DNA from: Chlorokybus atmophyticus
Taxonomy: Eukaryota > Plantae > Mesostigma and Chlorokybus algae
Assembly: GCA_009103225.1 (NCBI GenBank)
Contig: RHPI01000385.1
Location: forward strand, 19,962 to 83,961
Length of the DNA stretch: 64,000 bases
Reading direction: 5' to 3'
Below the pieces are notes generated by a model. The model was not told where the DNA came from and searched no databases. It saw only the letters and a program-made list of their open reading frames with translations. A program made the position numbers and the translations under genes. Below are positions 10,930 through 48,255 of this stretch, piece by piece (the stretch's first letter is position 1; every line of letters begins with the position of its first letter).

Positions 10930-13900
10930 TCACAAGTCCTCGTACCAAAAGCTTCCTGTACCTCTGCGCCTGTCTTGGCGCTGGCCTCTAGTTCTAGGCT
11001 GCTGCGTCTTTGTTCTAGCAGAGTTATACCACTCGGGCTCTTGCCACGACTCATACCCTGTATTGCTAGCCCTGCGCCTATCCCTGGCATCAGTTGTACC
11101 ACTCCAGAACGGGTACCTGTCACCGTACGACGAGGTGCTTGGCTTGTAATGCTGCGAGCGCTGCCTGTCCTCTTCTGCAAAGTCATACTCGCGGCGCTTC
11201 CTGTCATCCGACAAGACGCTGTAGGCCTCAGATACTAGCTTGAACAGGCGGTCTGCTTCACCGCGCACCGATTGCGCAACGTCCTCCGAGCACCCGTCAG
11301 GAAGCAAGTACGCTGCTGCTTTGTCGGGATGATGGCGCAAGGCAGCACGATGATATGCCTTCTTCACATCGAGTTTGGAGCTGCCCTTGGGAATCCCCAG
11401 CAGCTGGTAGTAGTCGAGCGGCAAAGTCCGGCCCGCCAGCTGTCGAGCTTGCTTCAAGCGGTCCAACACGTCAGTGGAGTGCCCAGCCAGTGCCTGCAAG
11501 CTTTCCAGATCTTGGACGGTGGCCGCGCCATCGCGGATTGCTTGATGCAGTGCAGCGCGCCGTGAAAGGGATTTGGAGTAGCGGGGATTGAGTGCCATGG
11601 CAACGGTGCAGTCCGCTATCGCATCTGTGGCACGCCCCAGTGCTTGTGCGCAAGCTGCTCTGTTGCTGAATAGCACTGCTCTCACTGGATCTACATACGC
11701 TCCACACAGAGCAAGAGCTTCTGTATACTTGTCTGACGCTTCCTGATACCGACCATCACTGTGCAAAACGTTCCCAGCCTCCTGCCACGCACAATACTCC
11801 GTTAGTAGGGCCACATCACCAGAGGTACAGCAGAAGTACAGATGAATCTACAAGGCCCAGCACAAACAGATTGCCTTTGCCAACCATTTTTGACATTCAT
11901 TCATCATTGATCTCCCCACGCAAGCTTGTAACCACATCGCGCACATCAAACAAGTGTGCCAATCAAGGACTGATAACGTCTGCATTGTCACCTATCAAGT
12001 ACTGACCTTCAGAGACAGGATGCTTTGTATGGTGGTTACAAGGTTGACCGAGTTGTTGCTGGCCACGCTGCTGGTACGCATGCTTTGCAATCGTCGTTGC
12101 AATAACTTCAGTGCCAGCTCCAACTCGCCAGCACAGAAGCGAATGCGGGCTGCTCTGTCCAGCCAGTCCGCTGCTTCTGCATCTGCATAGCATTGGCAGG
12201 TCTAGTCTCAGTCTAGGCTTGCGATCAGCCAGTACACAAGCTGCGACCAGCAACATGCGAGGCATAATTGCACCATCAAGTGTTACCTTGCGCATCATCT
12301 GGCGATTGCTGCTGAGACACCTTGCTGCACTCCTCCTCGCAGTATGCAGCTGCAGTCTCGTACTTCTTGAGCTGCGTGACACAAGCATAAAATCAGCTGC
12401 ACATACTGATAGCAGGTTAGCACATATGCCGGTCGCTTAAGAGCCCCAATAGCAGGAATGCCGCAACGTACAGTGAGCAGCACGAAGACATGGAGGCGCT
12501 TCAGATCAGACCAGTGCGGAGCAAGGATGAGAGTTTGTTCAGATATCTGCAGCGCTCGTGAGGGGTCTGGTTGTGAAGCCTTCACAGCACCATCAAGCGG
12601 GTTCCCGTGCTGAAAGCAGAATGTCGCAGCCGCATTGGTAGCACCAGCAACAAGTTCTTGTATGCGAACATGCTGTGCACGAATGCGCTCTGCAGTACTT
12701 CGCCCTTCCGCAATCTCTTGCAGGATGGATGCACGAGACTCGTAGTCCAATTGGCTTGCCCATGGCTCACAATCGCGGTATGCCTCCAGCACAGCTGCTG
12801 TATCTCCCAGCCTCAGTTGGCAGCTGCGCATAGCATTGTTATAATCAATGCATGTTGGTAGCATGCCAGTGTGTACACAAATGTGCTGATGAGAAACACA
12901 ACTGCGAACAAACACAATACTCTGGTACTCACATCGCAAGGCGCAAACGCGGCCGCAAGTATGACGCATTATGTTCAAGCGCAGATCTGCAATCCAGCAT
13001 AGCATGATAAGGCCGTCCTTGCATAAGCCGTGTAGCCGCCCGGTTGCCGTAAGAGAGAGCCACTGTATGGCCTTCCCTGCCACCCGGTGATCTGGACTTG
13101 CCAAAGGCTTGCGCGCTGCACTGTTCTTCTGCCTCCAATGCAAGTGCGATTGCCTTGGAGAAGGCCTTCTCGGCCAGATGGTAGTCACCTTGTTTGTAGA
13201 AGTCCTTGCCTTGTACCCGCACCTCCTCTGCTGCTGCATGTTTTGCTGCCACTTGCACGGCCGCTGCAGAGGCAGCTGCTGCTGCTGCTATGAAACTTGG
13301 GGACGGAACGGGCATGCTGCTGCCGCGCGGCTCAGCATCTGTGCCGGACAGTGATGTGAGATGATAAATGCCAACATGTCTGCAGCAGACAAGGCAGCTA
13401 CTGTCCTCACCTTGCGACGCCTTTGCCGGTGATCGGACAGGTCTGCGACTGCGATGCGAGTGATGGCTGCGAGGTTTTCTAGGGCTAATGCTAAGGCTGG
13501 CCATACCGTTCTCCACAGCCGTGAACTGGAAAGTCAGAGGGGGCCCAGTGACATCTGATGACTGTGCTGAGCTGTATGTGGCGCTTGCATCATCTTGCAT
13601 AGTAACGCTCATGGTGTTCAACTTCGCACTGCGGTCAACAATGTGCATCTTTGTGAGATCTACTCCTAAACGGCCCAGCTCCTCAGATGGTATGCTGCCA
13701 AGATTGAGACGTGCAGTAGCATCGCGCAGCACTTCCACTGACACCGGTTCCACTCCATCCGAAGCAGCACTGGCACTTATGCTCGTCGTGCCTGGCAACG
13801 ATGTCGCTGGTATACTGAAAGATGCGGGTACGGACCCTGTAGGCTTGCGGTGCGCCCTGTGAGCGCTATGTTTGGACTTATGAGCAGGTGTCTTGTTGGC

Positions 13901-15622
13901 AATGGGTGTTGCTGTTGAGCCAAAAACGAACGGCTGAACAGGATCCGGCTCAAATCTTGCTGCATATGGTGTGCCCACAGCTGGCGCACCCTCTGCTGCA
14001 GGTGCACTCTCTGCAGTCACAGTGTCCGTGTCTACTTGTGGCGGGGGCGATACGCGCATGGGGCTGCCCGGTGCCATGTCCAAGGCAGAAAAGGCTTCAG
14101 CTGAGAAAAAGCTTGGTTCGGTTGTGCATGTTGATGCTCCAGTTGCCGGGTTGCTTGCTGTCTCTTTCCTTGTGCTGCTTGGGTGGCGAGGGCGACGCTG
14201 GACACGACGCGCTGAAGGAGGTGGCGTCTGACACTCCCCTGTGCTCCCCTGTGCTTTACAAGCGCTGAATACGAATGATGGAGATGCAGATGCCGCAGCA
14301 GGTTCCTCACCCCCAGTCTCAGCAGATTCGCCCGCACCCTCTGCGGGCAATGGAGTTGCCGTATGCGCATGCTGCAATGGTGAATACTCTTCATCTGAGG
14401 AGTGCTTGACCTCACTGCAGTCATCATTGGCATTCTCAAACTGTGCAAATGCGCTGATCGTGCTCTTCTGTTTGGGAGATGACGTGCCACCATTGGCATG
14501 TCGCATCCCAGATGAGGCCGTATCCGTGTCCATGTCGCTGGCAGCCGGAGATGACGGAGGCGTCAGATAGACAGAGGACGAGACGGTGGGTGAATCAGGC
14601 TGCTCCTTGTCAATGGTGGACCGCACGCTGGTGAACTGCACTCCTTGGGATACACTGGGCATGGGTTCCATAGGACAAGTAGACTCGCGGTGTTCAACGC
14701 CATTTGCAACATTGTTGGGTTGCAGGTAGCTGGCCGCTGGAGACACCTTGGCACTGCTTGCAACCACATTGGCTGCTTTGGGTGGTTGCAAAGTCCGTTT
14801 GCTATTGCTGACATCTTCCGCCGTCAAGCCTTGTGCGGTGCTGTCAGCTTTGGAATGCTCTGCACGTGTCGTGTCCTGAGCTGTGTGCTCATGCTTCCTT
14901 GCCAGATGCTGCTGGCGTTTTTGGTAGACATTGAAGGCAGGAGAATGATTTCCCCCCGCCTGCTGAGGGTTGCCTTGTGGCAGCGGCCATGATTGCATGC
15001 TTGGAGCAAAAGGCTGCGGGTGAGGATCATCAGGCATTGCGTTGAATGAATGCAAAGATCCCACAAGAGACAAATGTTCTTTGCGCAGGCCTACCGCAGA
15101 GCTCGCAGGAGGAAGAGTGCTGGGCCCCGAACCCCTGCTTCCGCTCATCACAACGGGCGTGGGCATCCACTGACGGTGCACATTTCCTGTGGGCTGCATT
15201 TCAGCGCTCGGATTCGTCTGGTGGAGATATGCAAGCGCATCATCGCCAGCACGTTGCGATGAGCCCGCATTGTTGTTGACCGGGCGCAACACGCCACCAC
15301 GCCCAAAGAGAACTGAACGCCCTGGGTTGAAGGCACTGCTTGGCTGCTGCGCAAACGTTGGGCGGTTGACATCATGCTGCTTCAAAAATGGCCGAGCTTG
15401 TGATGATGATTCCTGCTGCTGCTCCCAAACCTGCTGGACCTTCGGCCAGTCTCCAGACTGCTCTCGAACACTCTCGGGTTGCCAGTCAGCAGGGACATTT
15501 GGGAAACGCCGCGACTGGTGCGCAGGCTGCTGCACTACGACAGGTGCGGCCCACATGCCAGTACCAACAAACAGAGACGATGCAGCACTCCTGCTGCGGT
15601 GACGAGCAGTAGCATCTGCCAT
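10930..15622 (-). CDS. TPR-repeat + C-terminal J-domain co-chaperone (DNAJC7/TPR2-like) with a long disordered N-terminus
   Basis: The 897-codon first exon ends in TPRs (GKDFYKQGDYHLAEKAFSKAI, SYGNRAATRLM). The last exon has TPRs (FSNRAACAQALG) and a J domain (DYYQLLGI...KKAYHRAALRHHPDK). Confidence 0.9.
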
Positions 15623-24839: not shown

Positions 24840-27800
24840 CCAGATACAACGCTGCTGCTCACCTGCTGGAATCTGAGCGTCATGTCATCCAGGGCGTTAT
24901 TCAATCCCATGACATGGCGCTGGCTGCTGGCCAGCTGCACTTGAAGCTGCCCCACTCGCTTGTGCATTCTGCATGAGACCGAACTAATACTCATGAACAT
25001 AGGCACGCACACGCAAATGCTCATGCACACGCAAGCAGCAAATCATTTAGACGAGCAGCAAAAAGCTTCAACACGTGACTCGCGGTACAACAACATGTCA
25101 CTATTACCTGAACCCCGTCATCTCGTGCTCGCTCAAGCTCCCCCTCACCTCCCTCAACTTCCCCAACACCACCTTGTGCGCGTGCGCGGCCCTCCTCTTC
25201 TCCTCCACCACCCCCTTCACACCACACCACCACACACACATCACCACCACATTGTTACCACACCTCCCCCCCNAACCCAACTCACCCTCAGCGTGTGTTC
25301 GAGCCGGCGTCCCGCATCCGCCATGTTCCGGAGTCGCTCCTCGCGCGCGAAGGCCTCGCGCTCCAACGCGACGCAGCGCTGGCGAAGGCTCCATGCCGTG
25401 GATTGGAGAGTCGCCGCCCGAGTAGCTAAGGCCATGCCGTCCTCGGCTGCGGCACGCGAGCACAGGGAGTAAGGGGTGGTGTGGGTGTGCGTGCGAGCGT
25501 GTGTGCGTGCATAATTGCGCGCGCAGGTACCAAACTCAAGCATTCATCATCGTTACCACAGGCATTCTTCAGCACAATTGTCGTGTTGCTGCTTTCAGGT
25601 TGGCCATCGTCGTTATCGTTCCCAATCAGGCCATCAACACCGACGCCACCAAACACAACCATGCGATGCCCCATGCACACAGCCACATGCGCCGCCCTTC
25701 CGCCAACATCATCTCCCCCTCCCACCTCTTTCCTCCTCACCCACACTCTCTCCCCCTCCCCCTCGTCTTCATCGCTCACATCCAGCGTGTACACGTGCGT
25801 GTTGTATCCCTCCCCATCAAAGCCTCCCACAATAACAAGACTCCCCCCCGTCGCGACCAGCGCGTGCTGGCGCATCGGCGGGGGCGGGGAGATTGTGATG
25901 AATTCGACCCAGCAGCGGGTGGAGAGGTCGAGCATGTGGAGGTCGGAGAGGTAGGAGGAGGAGGAGGAGAAGCCGGCGTGGATGAAGAGGCGGGAGCCAA
26001 TGACGGCTGCAGCGTGACTGAGGACAAGGGGGAGTTCAGAGCCCTGAAGATGCTCTGTGCGCGATCAACCTTGCATGCCAGTGCGCAAACACATGTATGC
26101 GCTCGTGTACTCATGCAAGCACGCACGCATGCACACACACAGACATAGACACACGTGTACGCGCGCGCACACGCACATGCACACGCGCACGTGCACACAA
26201 GCGCACACGCGCACGCACGCGCCCAACATCTACGCCATGTCCAACTTTCTGACTACATACCTCCGTCGCGGGCACGGCGTGGTCCCAAACGTCTCCATCT
26301 CACTCCACGTCCTCCTCTTCACATCACACACCCACAGATCATTCAAACACCCCCCTCCACCCCCTCCCCGTCCNNNNNNNNNNNNNNNNNNNNNNNNNNN
26401 NNNNNNNNNNNNNNNNNNNNNNNNNNNNNNNNNNNNNNNNNNNNNNNNNNNNNNNNNNNNNNNNNNNNNNNNNNNNNNNNNNNNNNNNNNNNNNNNNNNN
26501 NNNNNNNNNNNNNNNNNNNNNNNNNNNNNNNNNNNNNNNNNNNNNNNNNNNNNNNNNNNNNNNNNNNNNNNNNNNNNNNNNNNNNNNNNNNNNNNNNNNN
26601 NNNNNNNNNNNNNNNNNNNNNNNNNNNNNNNNNNNNNNNNNNNNNNNNNNNNNNNNNNNNNNNNNNNNNNNNNNNNNNNNNNNNNNNNNNNNNNNNNNNN
26701 NNNNNNNNNNNNNNNNNNNNNNNNNNNNNNNNNNNNNNNNNNNNNNNNNNNNNNNNNNNNNNNNNNNNNNNNNNNNNNNNNNNNNNNNNNNNNNNNNNNN
26801 NNNNNNNNNNNNNNNNNNNNNNNNNNNNNNNNNNNNNNNNNNNNNNNNNNNNNNNNNNNNNNNNNNNNNNNNNNNNNNNNNNNNNNNNNNNNNNNNNNNN
26901 NNNNNNNNNNNNNNNNNNNNNNNNNNNNNNNNNNNNNNNNNNNNNNNNNNNNNNNNNNNNNNNNNNNNNNNNNNNNNNNNNNNNNNNNNNNNNNNNNNNN
27001 NNNNNNNNNNNNNNNNNNNNNNNNNNNNNNNNNNNNNNNNNNNNNNNNNNNNNNNNNNNNNNNNNNNNNNNNNNNNNNNNNNNNNNNNNNNNNNNNNNNN
27101 NNNNNNNNNNNNNNNNNNNNNNNNNNNNNNNNNNNNNNNNNNNNNNNNNNNNNNNNNNNNNNNNNNNNNNNNNNNNNNNNNNNNNNACACGCACTCACTC
27201 CCACCCCCGCCCTCATACACCCACGCCCACACATCCTCTCACCAGCGTCGTAGACCCACACGTCATCGAGCCACTCTCTCCCGTCGTACCCTCCAAACAC
27301 CGCCACGCGGCTGTCGCTCGGCCTGCCCACCCTCGCTCCGACCGCGCCGCATCGGCCCCTAGGGCCAACACCAGCTGTGACCTCCTGGTCGTTGGGACCT
27401 CCTGGCGCTGGGCCACCGGGCACCCACCTCAAAACACCTTGTGAGAAGGAATGGAAGAAATGACACTTAGGGAAGGAAATACATGGTAGTGGCGAGTCAA
27501 CGACACTTGAATGTGCATACACAACTGTCACCACAGTACACATGTAGCGGTGACCACCACTTCACATGGCCCACACATGCGCGTGCATGCGCGGATACAT
27601 GCATAGAGCGCCACCCATGGGCACGCATGCAGACGTGCGCTCCCATCTGTGTCCCTCAATGCATGCACACGGACACACACATATGTCTTCAATCTTGGCA
27701 CAGAGAGACATGCGGGCGCATGCATGAACGAACACGTACTATCCAGCAGACCCGAGTGCTCCCAAGGCGGACACCGTCCATTTGCCCTCCTCAGCTCCTC

Positions 27801-40775: not shown

Positions 40776-43312
40776 CTATGTGTGCTCAGTGTCAGCAAGG
40801 AATGCAGATTTTCGGGGACTCGCGGGCGGAGTAGCTTTCGCGGCAGCAGCATTGTTGGTATTGTCGGCAGCAACACTTCCCTGGCTTTGACTTGTCCCTC
40901 GCAACTTGAACAATAGATTGCCCAGCAAGCTCTCTCTTCTGGACGACAACTTGGACGACTGCGTGAGAAAAACTGGTTCAAGTCATGTAACAGTGGCAAA
41001 TGTGTGCTTTGCGTGCATTGCATTGCACTTGCCGGCGTGCTGATCGGCCGCAGCCACTTCATTATGGACTCGTACAGTGCGACGTGGCCAGTGCTTGCCC
41101 CCAACTCAAACGCCAGCTGTGAGACAGATATCAGCAGATTGGAGTGTTGAGCAGTGATGAGTGGTACTCTGTGCACAGAATGTGCACCTGCGAGTCTGCG
41201 TCCTGATGCCTCTTTGCGTGTGCGTGACCCAACTCCCGACTCAAGTGCGCCAACCTCTCCAGCCTCCAACCTTGCTGCGAAGCCTCCGACAGCCGGCTAT
41301 ATCTGTCATGCCAGCAGTCAGTCATGTTGACAGGGTGTGCGCGCACGCATCTGCGTGTGTGTGCGCGAGCTCACGCATGCACACACTCAGGCTGCACGCG
41401 CATTCGCGCGCACGCACGACATGTTACTAGTCACAGCGATCCCAACACCTCCTCACCTTGCGTATAGTTGCGGCAGCTGGTGCATCTCATCCCTCACGGC
41501 CGCGAACGCCTCCTCGCTGTCGCCATCGGGCGACTCGAAGTCGTCGTAGCCGTCGTACAGGTCGTCCTCGAACCGGTGCGCGGGGTCGCGGCTGATACCC
41601 AGGAACGCTTTGGCCGTGAAGGGAAGGAGACGGTCGGGGTGACGAGCGACGGACGGGACAAGAGTGATGCGGGTGGATTCGACCCTGGGGAAGACAAAGC
41701 GTTGGGTTGTGGGTGGATGGTGCTGTAATGTGAGGAAGGAGTTTTGATTTGCCTACTGCGGTGCGATGTGGAGAGAAGTGGGTAGCACCACAGTGGCACA
41801 CACGCACGCGCGCGCGCGCGGAGTGTGTGTCCGCACACGCACGCGCACGGGCATACACGCACACTTACACGTATGCCATTGTATTTATGCACACGCCGGG
41901 GTACATGCATGCACGCGCGGACACACTTGCACACAGGCGCCAACTCACCTGTCTTCCGGGGGTGCGATGCGTGGGAATAGCGAGTATCCCAGGTTGTCCT
42001 CGACGGACAAGCCGTCCTGCTTCAGCTGCGCGGAGTAGCCGAAGCCCACGAGACCGTACGTGAAGTTCATCACCAACTCGATCTGTGCACGCAGTAACAC
42101 AATAGTAACACAAGACATCAGGGTCAATCAACGATGGTGACGACCGAACATCAACAACAACAACAACAACAACAACAACATCGACAACGTCAACAACAAC
42201 GATAATAGTCACAACAACAACTCAATTGTAATTGGTATTTAAGTTGTAGTTGTCATCGCCGTTGTTGTTGTACACGAGAACAACAGCAACAGCAACAGCA
42301 ACAATCACAACCTCAACAGCATCCATCAATGTCATCGTCAGTTGCGACAACGAGCACCATCAACAACGACAACAACATTAACAACATCAGCAACCTCGCA
42401 CCTGCCCGGTAACCAGGTGTCCATTCCACAGGTCGAACGTCCCGTCGAACTGCTGCGCGCGTATGACGTCGTGCAGGTGGAACGACACCGCGCCCACCTC
42501 GCGCCCACCACTGTGTTGACTCTCTTCTCGCCTCTCCTTGGCCTCTTTGCCACCGGCATGTTGGTCTCCCCAACCCGTTGTTCTCTTTGATGCGTCACTG
42601 CCTACGTGGCTGGCGGGGGCGCCCGCCAGCTTGTGACCCCTCGCGTCCTCCACCCACACCTAAGTGAGTTGAAACAACTGCTATCACTCCGCTGTGCATT
42701 GCACCACTCTACTTGAAAATCACACCAGCAGTACTACTACGTGTATGCTGCTTGAGTTCATCAACTGCACAAACGGCAAATCACACTAGTAGACATGATT
42801 GCGTTGTACAAGATGGTTGGCTCCTGTTCTTATGTGCGGTGGTGCCGGTGGTGATGTTTACACAGAGAGAATACGCGCAAGTGCATACGCACACGCCACG
42901 GCGCACACATGCACGCACGCAATGACCCACCCACCTGTATCGTCAGCAGATTGAACGGATGCCTCCTCGCTCTCGCCGCACACACGGGCACGTGCACCAT
43001 CTGCTGCCACTCCACCGCTCCCCCTCCCCCTCCCACCCACGCCAGCCTCGTCCTCTTCTCCACATGCCTCGCCCTCACCCTCACACCACCCAACTGTGGA
43101 CTTGCATCCTTGTGACTGTTATTACCCTTGTTGTTCTCAGTGTTGAGGACCGCCCTCCTGGCGTAGAGTGCCACCACCCCCAGCACGGCCGGGGCGGCGT
43201 CGTCCTCGAGGAGGAGGACGCTCGCGCCGGAGGAGGAGGAGGCGGAGGAGGAGGAGGACAGGCGGGCGGCGGTGTCATCATTGTCCTCATAGCTGCCGTG
43301 GTCGGTGTCCAT
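40776..43312 (-). CDS. C2-domain protein resembling CatSper-tau/C2CD6 (ALS2CR11); 7 exons, 465 aa
   Basis: Exons 42935-43312, 42402-42659, 41949-42082, 41457-41684, 41188-41302, 41029-41116 and 40776-40972 have consistent phases and total 1398 nt. Core: VGAVSFHLHDVIR...IELVMNFTYGLVGFGYSAQLK...SLFPRIAPPEDR. Confidence 0.72.
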
Positions 43313-43610
43313 CTTATGGGGCGGTTGATCAAGAGGAAGAAGACGGGAGCTGAGAAGGTAACTCTAGAAACCAAACGAAAACGTGTGGGTTGTTGTCCAC
43401 CCAGGGTTGGGTGGCACATGGGCACGTACAAGCTATAGCCTAACTTCCGTTTGCTTGCTTTCCTGTCATGAGATGGCGTGCGCTGTTTTGTACACACGTG
43501 ATGATTGGCGATAGCAATAATGTGTTGCCGACGAAGCCAACATCCAAAAACATTCCGACCAATTGAACAGATACATGTTGATCGCACATCAAAAAGAGCA
43601 ATAACGCACC

Positions 43611-44211
43611 TTAAGTGAATCTCAGGCTCCCACAGAAGTCATCCTTATTCCAGACACATTTGTGCCACAGCAGCAGCTCTTCCGCACTAGGCCTAAGCTA
43701 GACCAAGCTGGACACCAGGGATCGCACCAGTGTGCAACGTGTGAGCACACCTCGAAGAGTGTGTGATGCAGCGTGGGTTGTTGCAAGCGTTTGATCATTA
43801 CGATCAACAACAACAGGCAGGTTCTAACGCGAGGTGACTAGAGATTGGGAGCCTACACTGATAGGTTAAAACAAAACAAAAGGATACAGACATATGCGCA
43901 CGCACAGAATCTCCACTATTCTGCCTTCACACTTATAGTCGTTGAGATCAAGAGTGTGACGACCACAATCAACACCAGCTGCTAAATAAATATTATACTG
44001 CAAGGCCACTGGTGAATAGGAGCTCACACTGATCGCTTGCAACCAGGAGCAGGATGACACATACCCACACATAAGCACGCACACACACTCAGTCGCTCAC
44101 GCTCTTTGAGCTCACGTGACACGCACGGCAATGTTGTTCGGGATCAGCGACCCCGATTGGAACGCAAAGCTTACAAACCGGATTGATGATGTGTGTGATC
44201 CGGATCTTGCG
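43611..44211 (-). CDS. Small C2-like domain protein with a Cys/His (zinc-binding?) insertion; 5' end not found
   Basis: Exons 44116-44211, 43906-43997 and 43611-43692 join in frame: RKIRITHIINPVCKLCVPIGVADPEQHCRACHYNIYLAAGVDCGRHTLDLNDYKCEGRIVEILPSAEELLLWHKCVWNKDDFCGSLRFT*. Confidence 0.55.
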
Positions 44212-44632
44212 CTAACGGATGCAAGAATGAGCGCTGTGTTGGCTATGAGCATGAGATGTATGATTTCTGCTGGCGTGGCGGTCGAAACCGTCAAATTAGG
44301 CAAGAAGATTTGGCTTCAATCATGAGGCCTTCGGCAGCCACCGCTGCCAGCTCAGTATGCGCTAAGCCGTAAGCCTGGCGCAGGCGGCGGAGACGGAGGC
44401 GGTGGTAGCTGTGGCATTGTCGGCGGCGTAGTAGCTGGCATTGTCTTCGTGGTTGACCCCGTGTTGATCACTGTGGTGACTGATAGAGACTGTCGTTGCG
44501 AAAGCAAGCTGCTCGCAGTAGACTTCCATTAGCACCACCACCGCTCTTGCGTGGCTGGCTGCTTGCATGCCGTGTCCGTGAGGCAGGCATCGGTGGTGGT
44601 GACTGTTGCTGTTGTCTTCGTTTTCCCTGTGC

Positions 44633-47291
44633 ATGGCGGCGACGGCTGCTGCCGCGTGGTCGGCGTTGCTGCTGCCGACATCAGCACAAACTGCGACAGC
44701 GAGGCCGCAGCATGCTGCGCCTCAGCTGGAAGGCAGCCGCAGCAGCTTCAACAGCAGCAGTATTCGAGTCAAGATTGACAGAGGACGCAGCCGGCGGAGA
44801 CGGGCTGACGCAGGTAGGGCGCAATGCTGCGCCACTGTAGACACCGCCGCCTCCTCAGCTTCCACGGTGACAGCGCCCCCTGCCGCCCCCTCCCCCGCCC
44901 AGGACTTCTCCGCAGCCTCCCCGGTAAGGCGTCGGGCAAAGAGAGAGTTGAACTCATGCATTGCTACACGTGTATCAGCATTGTCAATGAGCGTGGCCTA
45001 CATGCATAAGGTGCACTGCTGCTGTTGCGATCATGAGTGCCATGCGAGACAAGCTAGACTGCCTCGCTCCTTCCAACAGTAGCAGATCTTAATCAATACA
45101 GCACGCAGTGCAATGGCTTGCCTGCAGCAGTACTATCTGTGTATTGTGTAGGTTTGCTTGCTCTGATGTTGTTGTGTGTTTTGAGACTAGGACGCGACTC
45201 AGCTCTCGCAGACAGCAATGCTGCTCGCAGTAGAAGCTCGCGTACTAGGTCATGTGCAAGTTAGGTTTTTCACCTTCAGTACGTGCTTTACAACTTCGCT
45301 GCAAGAGTTTTGCACGTGCACGCAAGCGCACTTCGATCAGCTGTCTTAGTCCATATGCATGCCGTTACTTGTAACGCTGGCATGGGTGTCACGAAAAGTG
45401 CTTGGTTTGCGAAGACTTCCGCAAGCCAACTTTGACACCGTTACCATAGCAAGGCATGTACACTGAAAAGCATGCATGGTCGAGTTAGTGGCAAAGTCCG
45501 CAATAAAACTGCATATAATGCTTACTTATGGTCATGTATGGTGACTTACGGTACTTCTCCACAACTTCCACAGAACGATCCCGCTTGCAGTGGTCAGGAC
45601 GAACTGGGTTTGAGGGAAAACAGAACAGCGTATCGCGCGCGATATGCCGTGCGCTGCTATGAGGTGGGCGTTACAAGACACGCAACACTTGACTCCATAG
45701 CCAACCTGCTTCAGGTACAATGTGTGTGTGTCATAAACATGGCTTACATTACTCTAGCCAATCGCCGGAAGTTGACACAAGCCTCCGGTATGGGTCAGGA
45801 ATCAGCAGCAAGTCATGCAGTAGAGCGTGGCATGACGCCTTTTACTCACCCTTCACGATCGCGCTGTGTTCATCAGGAGACCGCTGTGGACCATGCGCGC
45901 AGCCTTGGCTTCACCTCCGACGGCTTCGCCACAAGTAAGCTGATGTCGGACAGGAACCTCATCTGGGTCTTAGGGCGCCTGCATGTCCAAATGGACAGAT
46001 ATCCATCATGGTGAGCTCTCAGCTTGTGTCTCAAGCCTTGTCAAGCCATGGACATGTTGTGCCAATAGCTGACTGCTTCAATATTACTAAATAAATTGAA
46101 CATGTTGACCATTGTGAAAAGCTAGATTGTTGGCAATGTGGTCATGATCATGGTGCATGAGTATTACTCGCATGCACTGGCAGCCATGCAAGGGGAACAC
46201 GTTTGTCATACTCAATGTGACTTTGCTTACAGGGGGGATGTGGTAGAGATCGATACATTTTTCGATGAGGCGGGGCGCTTGGGAGTACGGCGAGACTGGG
46301 TAGTGCGAGACGCTATCACCCGAGAGCAGCTGGGCGCCGCCACAAGGTTGGTTGAGGGTTCAGCACCTCCGCAGTAGTGATAGTTGTAGGACCCCACCGA
46401 GTTGTTGGTACATAAGCCGTTCATACCTCGCAGCACGTGGCTGATGATGAACGAAAAGACTAGGCGGCTATCACGAATGCCGGAGGAGATGCGGGTGGAG
46501 TACATCAACTGCTCTCCCCGGCCGCAAAGGTAGCATAATAGCACTGTGACTTTTATATCAAAGCGAATGTAAAATCGTAGTAATGTTAGAGGCCTTAATG
46601 CCTTGGTGTGCTTCAAGACTTATATATGCTTGCACCTTGCATTGTTGCTTCACATTGCTGCTGGAGCAGGTTTGCACTTGGTGAGAACAACAGCGGGTAC
46701 ACGTCCAAGATACCAGAGCTGCCAAGTCCACCTCAATACAGCAGGACAGGCCTCCAGGTGTGTGGGTGTGACATGCAGGCAATCATCTTCACCATGAATG
46801 GTTGTGTCGCATTGCAGCACAGTGCTAACATTGCTGACTCTCCATCAGGCCCGAAGAGTTGACCTGGACATGAATGCGCATGTGAACAATGTCACCTACG
46901 TTGGCTGGCTACTTGAGGTCAGGTCACAAAGTGGCCTTGTCTGTAATATTGTTGCTGTTGCATCCTCAAATTGCCGCTGGGGACATTCTGACTGGTTACG
47001 TTGCAGGCTGTTCCAGCTCACGTGTTCAGTTCATACGAAGTCCACCAGCTGACAATCGAGTACAAGGCGGAGTGCGGGGAGGGTGAGCTGGTAGATTCCG
47101 AGTCCCGGCGGGAGGACAACTTTGAGCTCGCGTCGCCTCCTCCCGACGCCGAAGCGAAGCTGGACCCGCACGCGGAAGGGGAAGAGCTGTCGTTCGTGCA
47201 TCAGGTGCGCCTGCATGTGTCGAAGAAAGAGCTCAATAGAGCGCGGACGGTGTGGCGGCCGCGAAGTGGCAATGGTAATGGTAACTCGTGA
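44633..47291 (+). CDS. FATA: Plastid acyl-ACP thioesterase (FatA/FAT1)
   Basis: Transit-peptide exon 44633-44923, then YAVRCYEVG, WVLGRLHVQMDRYPSWGDVVEIDT, RRDWVVRD, STWLMMNEKTRRLSRMPEE, DLDMNAHVNNVTYVGWLLE, TIEYKAECG and RARTVWRP. Confidence 0.95.
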
Positions 47292-47597
47292 TGCAACAAA
47301 CAGGACCATTGCACGCGTATCTAACCAATGTGAGGGCGGTACTGTTGTAAACCTGTTGCATGCGCTTTGCAATCGCAGTTGCACCCGCACTGTTGGTTGC
47401 GTGAACACATGCGCGACTACCACATGACTCTGCTGTTGGCCAGCAAAGATAAGATACATCGATGACCTGCGGTTGTGGGGTCAAACCAAGTAAATATCGA
47501 TACACATCACCACAATCAGCATGTTGCAATGGACCTCGGTGCCCCTTTTAACTCAACCTCTGCCACTGTTATGAGTTGACCCCACCCCACCCTCCCC

Positions 47598-48255
47598 NNN
47601 NNNNNNNNNNNNNNNNNNNNNNNNNNNNNNNNNNNNNNNNNNNNNNNNNNNNNNNNNNNNNNNNNNNNNNNNNNNNNNNNNNNNNNNNNNNNNNNNNNNN
47701 NNNNNNNNNNNNNNNNNNNNNNNNNNNNNNNNNNNNNNNNNNNNNNNNNNNNNNNNNNNNNNNNNNNNNNNNNNNNNNNNNNNNNNNNNNNNNNNNNNNN
47801 NNNNNNNNNNNNNNNNNNNNNNNNNNNNNNNNNNNNNNNNNNNNNNNNNNNNNNNNNNNNNNNNNNNNNNNNNNNNNNNNNNNNNNNNNNNNNNNNNNNN
47901 NNNNNNNNNNNNNNNNNNNNNNNNNNNNNNNNNNNNNNNNNNNNNNNNNNNNNNNNNNNNNNNNNNNNNNNNNNNNNNNNNNNNNNNNNNNNNNNNNNNN
48001 NNNNNNNNNNNNNNNNNNNNNNNNNNNNNNNNNNNNNNNNNNNNNNNNNNNNNNNNNNNNNNNNNNNNNNNNNNNNNNNNNNNNNNNNNNNNNNNNNNNN
48101 NNNNNNNNNNNNNNNNNNNNNNNNNNNNNNNNNNNNNNNNNNNNNNNNNNNNNNNNNNNNNNNNNNNNNNNNNNNNNNNNNNNNNNNNNNNNNNNNNNNN
48201 NNNNNNNNNNNNNNNNNNNNNNNNNNNNNNNNNNNNNNNNNNNNNNNNNNNNNNC
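47598..48255. other. Assembly gap
   Basis: N run. Confidence 1.

Follow-up and report, generated by a model that had tools for sequence, protein, structure and literature searches.

In a 64,000-nucleotide stretch of the Chlorokybus atmophyticus genome (contig RHPI01000385.1, positions 19,962 to 83,961; hereafter the window), a minus-strand gene between window positions 43312 and 40776 probably encodes a member of the CTSRT family, the cation channel sperm-associated targeting subunit tau (CatSper-tau or C2CD6, formerly ALS2CR11; Pfam PF15729). The gene appears to be intact, spliced and stand-alone, and its product would be a C2–motif–helix protein acting in the delivery of a CatSper-type channel. 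It is a new family member in an unexpected lineage; that it functions with CatSper is what we infer.

The relatives of the gene were found with exon 3 (feature coordinates are collected in Table 1), whose 44 residues were used in an exhaustive phmmer search of representative proteins at E ≤1e-3. This gave 22 matches, 19 of them true relatives with 47–62% identity; the top multi-stretch matches, P0001, P0002 and P0011, are unrelated repeat proteins. The relatives range from ∼130 to 610 residues, the full-length ones carrying the motif of exon 3 at about residues 150–220. All 19 were scanned against Pfam. Of these, 13 have at least 250 residues, and ten (P0003, P0006–P0010, P0012, P0017, P0019 and P0020) matched PF15729 above its gathering cut-off of 24.4 bits, scoring 26.0–48.8 bits over positions 5/8–143 of the 143-position model, which stops just short of the post-C2 motif. 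The initial annotation had put the gene forward as a candidate algal homologue of C2CD6/ALS2CR11, a reading to be given up if there were no significant match to this family and better ones to another C2 family. Instead, PF15729 scored higher than both PF00168 (C2) and PF10358 (NT-C2) in all but one of the 11 relatives of at least 250 residues with a CTSRT match. A word search with a profile of 12 relatives (A1) returned 24 members, for 20 of which PF15729 was already precomputed; all of these were zoosporic-fungal or unnamed sequences, neither animals nor green algae being among them. A word search with P0009 returned P0009 alone, its low-complexity words dominating.

We then asked which parts of the window itself belong to the family. 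Profile A1 was searched against the 386 stop-to-stop open reading frame (ORF) pieces between 38 and 47 kb, and a second profile of 34 sequences (A2) against all 2,723 ORF pieces of the window. A1 matched exon 1 with 60.7 bits (profile positions 16–120), exon 2 with 44.5 bits (positions 122–163), exon 3 with 68 bits (positions 161–207), as expected by construction with exon 3 as the search query, and exon 4 with 20.4 bits (positions 207–266; E 5.7e-6 among the 386 pieces). With A2, only four pieces scored in the whole window, namely exons 3, 1, 2 and 4 (E 7.8e-20, 8.6e-16, 9.1e-14 and 0.012, respectively; 55.4 bits for exon 1). The four matching pieces all lie on the minus strand and are perfectly colinear on the profile. 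Since exons 1, 2 and 4 were not used in finding the family, their matches are an independent confirmation of membership, and the profile coordinates, by abutting where splice sites are predicted, validate the placing of the introns. The comparisons thus support a family link that is real but transitive, running through the relatives rather than through a direct match.

The invariant columns of the family are kept in exons 1–3 (GV, KRT, HPFN, HLHD, FDL, FxYG, GxGYS, QL, SLFPR and P), with the exception of a Tyr to Phe change inside G-Y-G-Y-S; in addition, the nearly invariant Phe that precedes this change is replaced by Val. Two C2 loops are also enlarged in the alga by lineage-specific insertions, the first encoded in exon 1 and the second, of ∼50 residues, in exon 2.

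Exons were placed from the raw sequence and a three-frame translation of the window. Exon 1 encodes a Ser-rich leader of ∼40 residues and, following it, the initial two thirds of the C2 domain, including its loop insertion; the ATG at 43312 fits the family pattern, in which members begin 20–60 residues before the C2 domain. Exon 2 opens with VWVED, followed by the charged or disordered loop insertion and by the C2 strands with the invariant HLHD and FDL motifs. An internal intron that would remove this insertion was considered and rejected, the sole candidate donor/acceptor pair being out of phase. The last C2 strand and the invariant post-C2 motif of the family, in the form F-x-Y-G-x-x-G-[YF]-G-Y-S-x-Q-L-K ... 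S-L-F-P-R-I-x-P-P, fall in exon 3, and exon 4 contributes the conserved stretch R-x-E...L-V-P...H-P-x-x-x-P-F, followed by an acidic linker and the first part of the helical region. The GT-AG borders of exons 1–4 are canonical and their phases compatible, the introns between them measure 264–319 bases, and the G+C content of the exons is 0.60–0.65 versus 0.42–0.59 in the introns. Intron 2 is dense in CAA/CAACAG-type microsatellites (42100–42400).

The peptide on which the initial annotation was based is present exactly on the minus strand. It is divided by a GT-AG intron, so that ...VGAVSFHLHDVIRAQQFDGTFDLWNGHLVTGQ closes exon 2 and IELVMNFTYGLVGFGYSAQLKQDGLSVEDNLGYSLFPRIAPPED is exon 3, the remainder (RVE...) running on into exon 4. 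The initial annotation set a human C2CD6 segment beside this peptide as a parallel; if that human sequence is right, mammalian C2CD6 would have the same motif after its C2 domain.

Structural information comes from an AlphaFold2 model of the Diphylleia relative P0012, built with a 34-sequence alignment. In this model, the relative is predicted to contain an eight-stranded C2 sandwich (residues 26–157) with the strands arranged as in C2 and a predicted local distance difference test (pLDDT) score of 93–97, followed by the invariant-motif region with a pLDDT of 46–53 and by a helical hairpin (residues 239–275, pLDDT ∼90). A Foldseek search with the model gave more than 300 C2 matches at E <1e-3, with target template modelling (TM) scores of 0.75–0.86. 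In the PDB, sequence searches with exons 2 and 3 and with the family profile yielded no relative, the uS11 matches among the results (E >0.5) being noise.

These structural neighbours are ordinary C2 domains, which raises the question of whether the gene could encode an unrelated C2 protein that resembles C2CD6 only through the shared fold. Exon 1 alone looks to a protein language model like NT-C2 or generic C2, all of its look-alikes being of C2 type with scores <0.9, and in the same relatives in which PF15729 gives 26–49 bits generic C2 still gives 18–34 bits. Against this, PF15729 aligns end to end (7–143 of 143) and ranks first among the families in 10 of the 11 relatives of at least 250 residues with a CTSRT match, and it was precomputed independently for 20 further relatives. 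We therefore regard resemblance by fold alone as highly improbable.

How might such a protein work? Its predicted layout is an N-terminal C2 domain, an invariant motif of ∼70 residues (FxYGxFGYGYSxQLK ... SLFPRIxPP ... PHPxFIPF), a helical hairpin and a variable tail. In mammals, CatSper-tau brings the CatSper Ca2+ channel to the sperm tail. In the mouse, the C2 domain of CatSper-tau is required, the protein reaches the flagellum independently, and it links the channel to the ciliary trafficking machinery (PMC8857959); C2CD6 interacts with the CatSper pore subunits (10.1101/2021.07.06.451342). By analogy with mouse CatSper-tau, the C2 domain would anchor the algal protein to vesicle and flagellar membranes from the cytoplasmic side. 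By eye, the loop positions of the family alignment do not preserve the acidic cluster of the canonical five-Asp Ca2+ site, so that a Ca2+-independent membrane association seems likelier. The invariant linear motif and the helices may bind cargo or trafficking partners; invariance combined with the lack of an independent fold in the model is what partner-binding motifs typically show. Chlorokybus forms biflagellate zoospores, and a CatSper-type channel complex could be delivered to their flagellar membrane in this way. Membrane binding, the CatSper partner, expression in zoospores and the course of the 3′ end are all to be read as parts of this proposal.

The distribution of the family bears on the choice of partner. 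Its named members come from Blastocladiomycota (Allomyces, Paraphysoderma, Sorochytrium, Catenaria, Blastocladiella and Coelomomyces), from many Chytridiomycota, and from Diphylleia rotans (CRuMs) and Lapot gusevi (Rhizaria); the remaining members are unnamed and come from metagenomes or run assemblies. Flagellate stages occur in every named lineage. In NCBI, the name ‘Hyaluronan and proteoglycan link protein 1’ is attached to four members, P0010, P0025, P0018 and P0047 (Allomyces arbusculus, Allomyces javanicus, Coelomomyces and Siphonaria), apparently a misannotation that has spread between records, as PF15729 or the family motif is present and a link domain is not.

One relative has a neighbour of particular relevance. 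On the metagenome contig ERZ27237625:k141_218249, P0009 (L001:1537–2943, minus strand) lies head-to-head with a channel gene (L001:3001–4440, plus strand), 58 bases apart. The channel has 468 residues and a single Ion_trans repeat of the voltage-gated type with the filter T-M-D-D-W, and its best single-repeat match in the PDB is CatSper1 (7eeb_A, 126 bits), compared with at most 113 bits for bacterial Nav. The genes here are intronless, and a nitrate reductase gene stands beside the pair. The pairing, a single case, is suggestive of a CatSper link; the channel could instead be a non-CatSper single-domain ‘EukCat’ (PMC6509283).

It is also conceivable that the gene is a true CTSRT gene working independently of CatSper. 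Its C2 protein would then be an ancestral adaptor of membrane trafficking in flagella or cilia at large, which animals later co-opted for CatSper. In the mouse, CatSper-tau arrives at the flagellum alone, and proteins of general ciliary trafficking and of vesicles are pulled down with it (PMC8857959), the family occurs in Diphylleia and Lapot, lineages that may or may not have CatSper, and nothing within the window ties the gene to a channel. On the other hand, the fungi named as members are zoosporic, the CatSper-zeta paper (PMC5362262) included Allomyces in its screen for CatSper auxiliary subunits, and P0009 adjoins a CatSper-like single-repeat channel. We consider a CatSper-independent role rather unlikely, and a protein for the delivery of a CatSper-type channel remains our preferred reading.

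The 3′ half of the gene is less well defined than exons 1–4. The splice phase of tentative exon 5 fits exon 4 (AG + A), and its predicted helix with R-L-E-R-L-A-x-L is like the ‘DR..RL.FL’ helix of the family; its alignment to the family profile is colinear (positions 272–294) and, at 0.8 bits, not significant. Tentative exon 6 follows a 71-base intron with a phase-0 acceptor and contains ‘...LYESIMKWLRP...’, which resembles the last conserved ‘Y..F..P’ patch of the family; again the profile match is not significant. After exon 6 one GT donor was found, from which the frame runs to the TGA at 40792 and not to the TAG at 40776. Over the last ∼180 bases (beyond ∼41030) none of the three frames has a coding-like G+C content at third codon positions (GC3; 0.54, 0.48 and 0.57), and 40776–40958 shows no homology to the family profile. 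Thus, of the ‘clean 7-exon’ gene described in the initial annotation, exons 1–4 are upheld by splice sites and profile matches, exons 5 and 6 have coding-like GC3 and a weak colinear likeness, and the last exon is not confirmed, no frame there having coding-like GC3 and the donor found after exon 6 leading to the TGA. The phase-consistent tail (40792–40958, minus strand) contains two Cys triplets and ends in C-I-P-C, resembling an acylation-type membrane anchor; GC3 backs no frame there.

Several results weigh against the assignment to CTSRT and to a CatSper-type function. Amongst the relatives, P0015 reaches 21.3 bits with PF15729 and so falls under the cut-off, P0014 gave no family in the Pfam scan, P0019 scores higher with generic C2 (34.3 bits) than with CTSRT (29.3 bits), and the Pfam scores are in general modest (26–49 bits). 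Exons 1–4, each scanned alone against Pfam at E up to 10, matched no family, the domain, 143 positions long, being spread over three exons and interrupted by two insertions; the Pfam ALS2CR11 comparison suggested in the initial annotation is negative for the single exons and positive for ten of the 13 longer relatives. None of the protein or PDB searches returned an animal C2CD6 sequence. The exon 3 search, in a collection which included the Chlat1 proteome, found nothing above 62% identity. No contig of the two RNA runs covers the gene, and its putative 3′ end shows no coding signal. A complex prediction for P0009 with its neighbouring channel gave no answer (score 0.00) and speaks neither for nor against the pairing.

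With regard to annotation, the lack of a match above 62% even though the Chlat1 proteome was searched suggests that the annotation lacks the gene, or at least its exon 3; the Chlorokybus CTSRT gene is thus probably unannotated. Exact look-ups of seven ORFs of the window found none of them in the searched collection. With regard to expression, two RNA runs hold part of the stretch, both small (14 and 44 million letters); the read search left out the repeats at 42142–42318 (intron 2) and the GGA-rich 43191–43265 (exon 1). The contigs of both runs cover only 44075–44233 and 44369 to at least 44600, and speak neither for nor against expression of the CTSRT gene.

The same results bear on the idea that the locus is the relic, decaying or silent, of a former CTSRT gene, now unexpressed or with its 3′ end lost. 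The lack of RNA contigs over the gene, the lack of an annotated protein with exon 3, the last 180 bases without a coding signal, the two large loop insertions and the replacement of the nearly invariant Phe and the invariant Tyr of the motif would all fit such a relic. However, exons 1–6 remain open, their splice sites are canonical, their phases agree and their GC3 is 0.73–0.86, and the other invariant residues in exons 1–3 are retained. Moreover, the RNA runs are tiny, and vegetative cultures would miss a zoospore-specific gene. A relic therefore seems very unlikely, and an intact CTSRT gene the better description.

If so, the finding changes the apparent age of the subunit. C2cd6 has been described as conserved in vertebrates (10.1101/2021.07.06.451342), and according to a review CatSper arose in the common ancestor of apusozoans, animals and fungi (PMC7935092). 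Our literature search found no paper joining CatSper with Chlorokybus, or with streptophytes beyond a reference list, and no mention of C2CD6 homologues in fungi or protists. To judge from the family's distribution, the tau targeting protein reaches much further back, and across many more lineages, than the term ‘vertebrate’ implies; a tau gene in a streptophyte alga as well as in CRuMs, Rhizaria and zoosporic fungi would push the subunit back to near the root of the eukaryotes. As a bolder step, which we offer only tentatively, Chlorokybus zoospores might carry a complete CatSper-type complex including tau. CatSper and its delivery factor would then be older than the split between Amorphea and Diaphoretickes, near the last eukaryotic common ancestor, and would have been lost in nearly all other Archaeplastida, and the disordered FGYGYS-QLK / SLFPR-PP / PHP-FIPF segment would be an ancient interface coupling the C2 anchor to the channel or the trafficking machinery. 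The algal tau gene helps to make testable the idea that the ‘sperm’ channel was an ancestral flagellar Ca2+ entry system. The invariant post-C2 motif, previously undescribed, is a likely functional interface and as such would bear on CatSper trafficking in human sperm.

The upstream neighbour, an acyl-ACP thioesterase gene, is on the plus strand, which makes the interval between the two a divergent intergenic region. Minus-strand ORF pieces at 43614–44997 had no Pfam or family-profile match, and a bicistronic or fused reading with these upstream pieces was rejected, having no family support and a plus-strand thioesterase gene as the upstream neighbour. In one RNA run (X1), a plus-strand contig begins at 44369 and was assigned to the thioesterase neighbour, and a 159-base contig of low depth lies at 44075–44233. 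An assembly gap, seen as a run of N at ∼47600–48230, gives strings of X in all ORFs across it. Elsewhere in the window, the ORF with TPR and DnaJ domains reads through two short in-frame introns (81 and 72 bases), the sole gaps relative to Chlat1 9093; its near-identity to this JGI protein (Table 1) places the window in the JGI Chlorokybus atmophyticus genome and bears out the green-algal host assumed at the outset.

Table 1. Positions of the CTSRT gene parts and of other features, numbered from the first base of the window (GC3, G+C content at third codon positions)
Feature	Position	Strand	Details
Exon 1	42935–43312	−	ATG at 43312; ends ...RHPFNLLTIQ; donor CAG|GTGGGT; GC3 0.82
Exon 2	42402–42659	−	VWVED ... 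LVTGQ; acceptor tag|GTG; donor CAG|GTGCGA; GC3 0.73
Exon 3	41949–42082	−	IELVMNF ... APPED + two bases; acceptor cag|ATC; donor AG|GTGAGT; GC3 0.86
Exon 4	41457–41684	−	One base, then VESTRITLVP ... LPQLYA + two bases; acceptor cag|G; donor AG|GTGAGG; GC3 0.81
Tentative exon 5	41188–41302	−	GC3 0.74
Tentative exon 6	41029–41116	−	GC3 0.79
Candidate 3′ end	40776–40958	−	Last exon of the initial annotation, to TAG 40776; alternative tail to TGA 40792
Intergenic region	43313–44368		∼1 kb, between the CTSRT gene and the divergent thioesterase gene
Acyl-ACP thioesterase gene	44369–47300	+	PF01643 at 45472–46011; PF20791 at 46798–47049 and 47001–47288
TPR + DnaJ gene	10930–15622	−	897-residue ORF 15622–12932; 845/846 identical to EukProt jgi/Chlat1/9093/Chrsp97S08417
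Long Kelch-repeat ORF	26233–27543	−	Several Kelch Pfam families

The predicted protein can be compared with three groups of known proteins. The generic C2 domains of otoferlin (C2A, 3l9b), MCTP2 (C2B, 2ep6), dysferlin (C2A, 4iqh) and Trichomonas (9bky) have a sandwich like that of the P0012 model, with target TM-scores of 0.75–0.82, but are only 13–21% identical and lack the HPFN, HLHD and post-C2 motifs of the CTSRT family. With mammalian C2CD6/CatSper-tau, the algal protein has in common a C2 domain of the PF15729 type at the N-terminus (established through the relatives of the window's gene), a soluble character with no transmembrane segment, and a flagellate organism. It differs in length, with ∼350–420 residues in the algal model against 557–691 in the mouse or a long form of >200 kDa, and in its two lineage-specific C2-loop insertions. 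The third group comprises uncharacterised C2 proteins of zoosporic fungi and protists, among them AMAG_03696/KNE59416.1 of Allomyces macrogynus, KAI9137033.1 of Paraphysoderma, EP00002_P010199 of Diphylleia rotans and EP00455_P003892 of Lapot gusevi. Public annotation lists the fungal genes as hypothetical or mistakes them for the link protein mentioned above. None of these proteins exceeds ∼45% identity to the alga overall, and the alga forms its own branch, with identity at 50–62% in exon 3 and ∼30–37% in exon 1. They nevertheless share with it the same architecture and invariant residues, comprising the C2 domain, the post-C2 motif, the PHPxFIPF patch and the helical hairpin.

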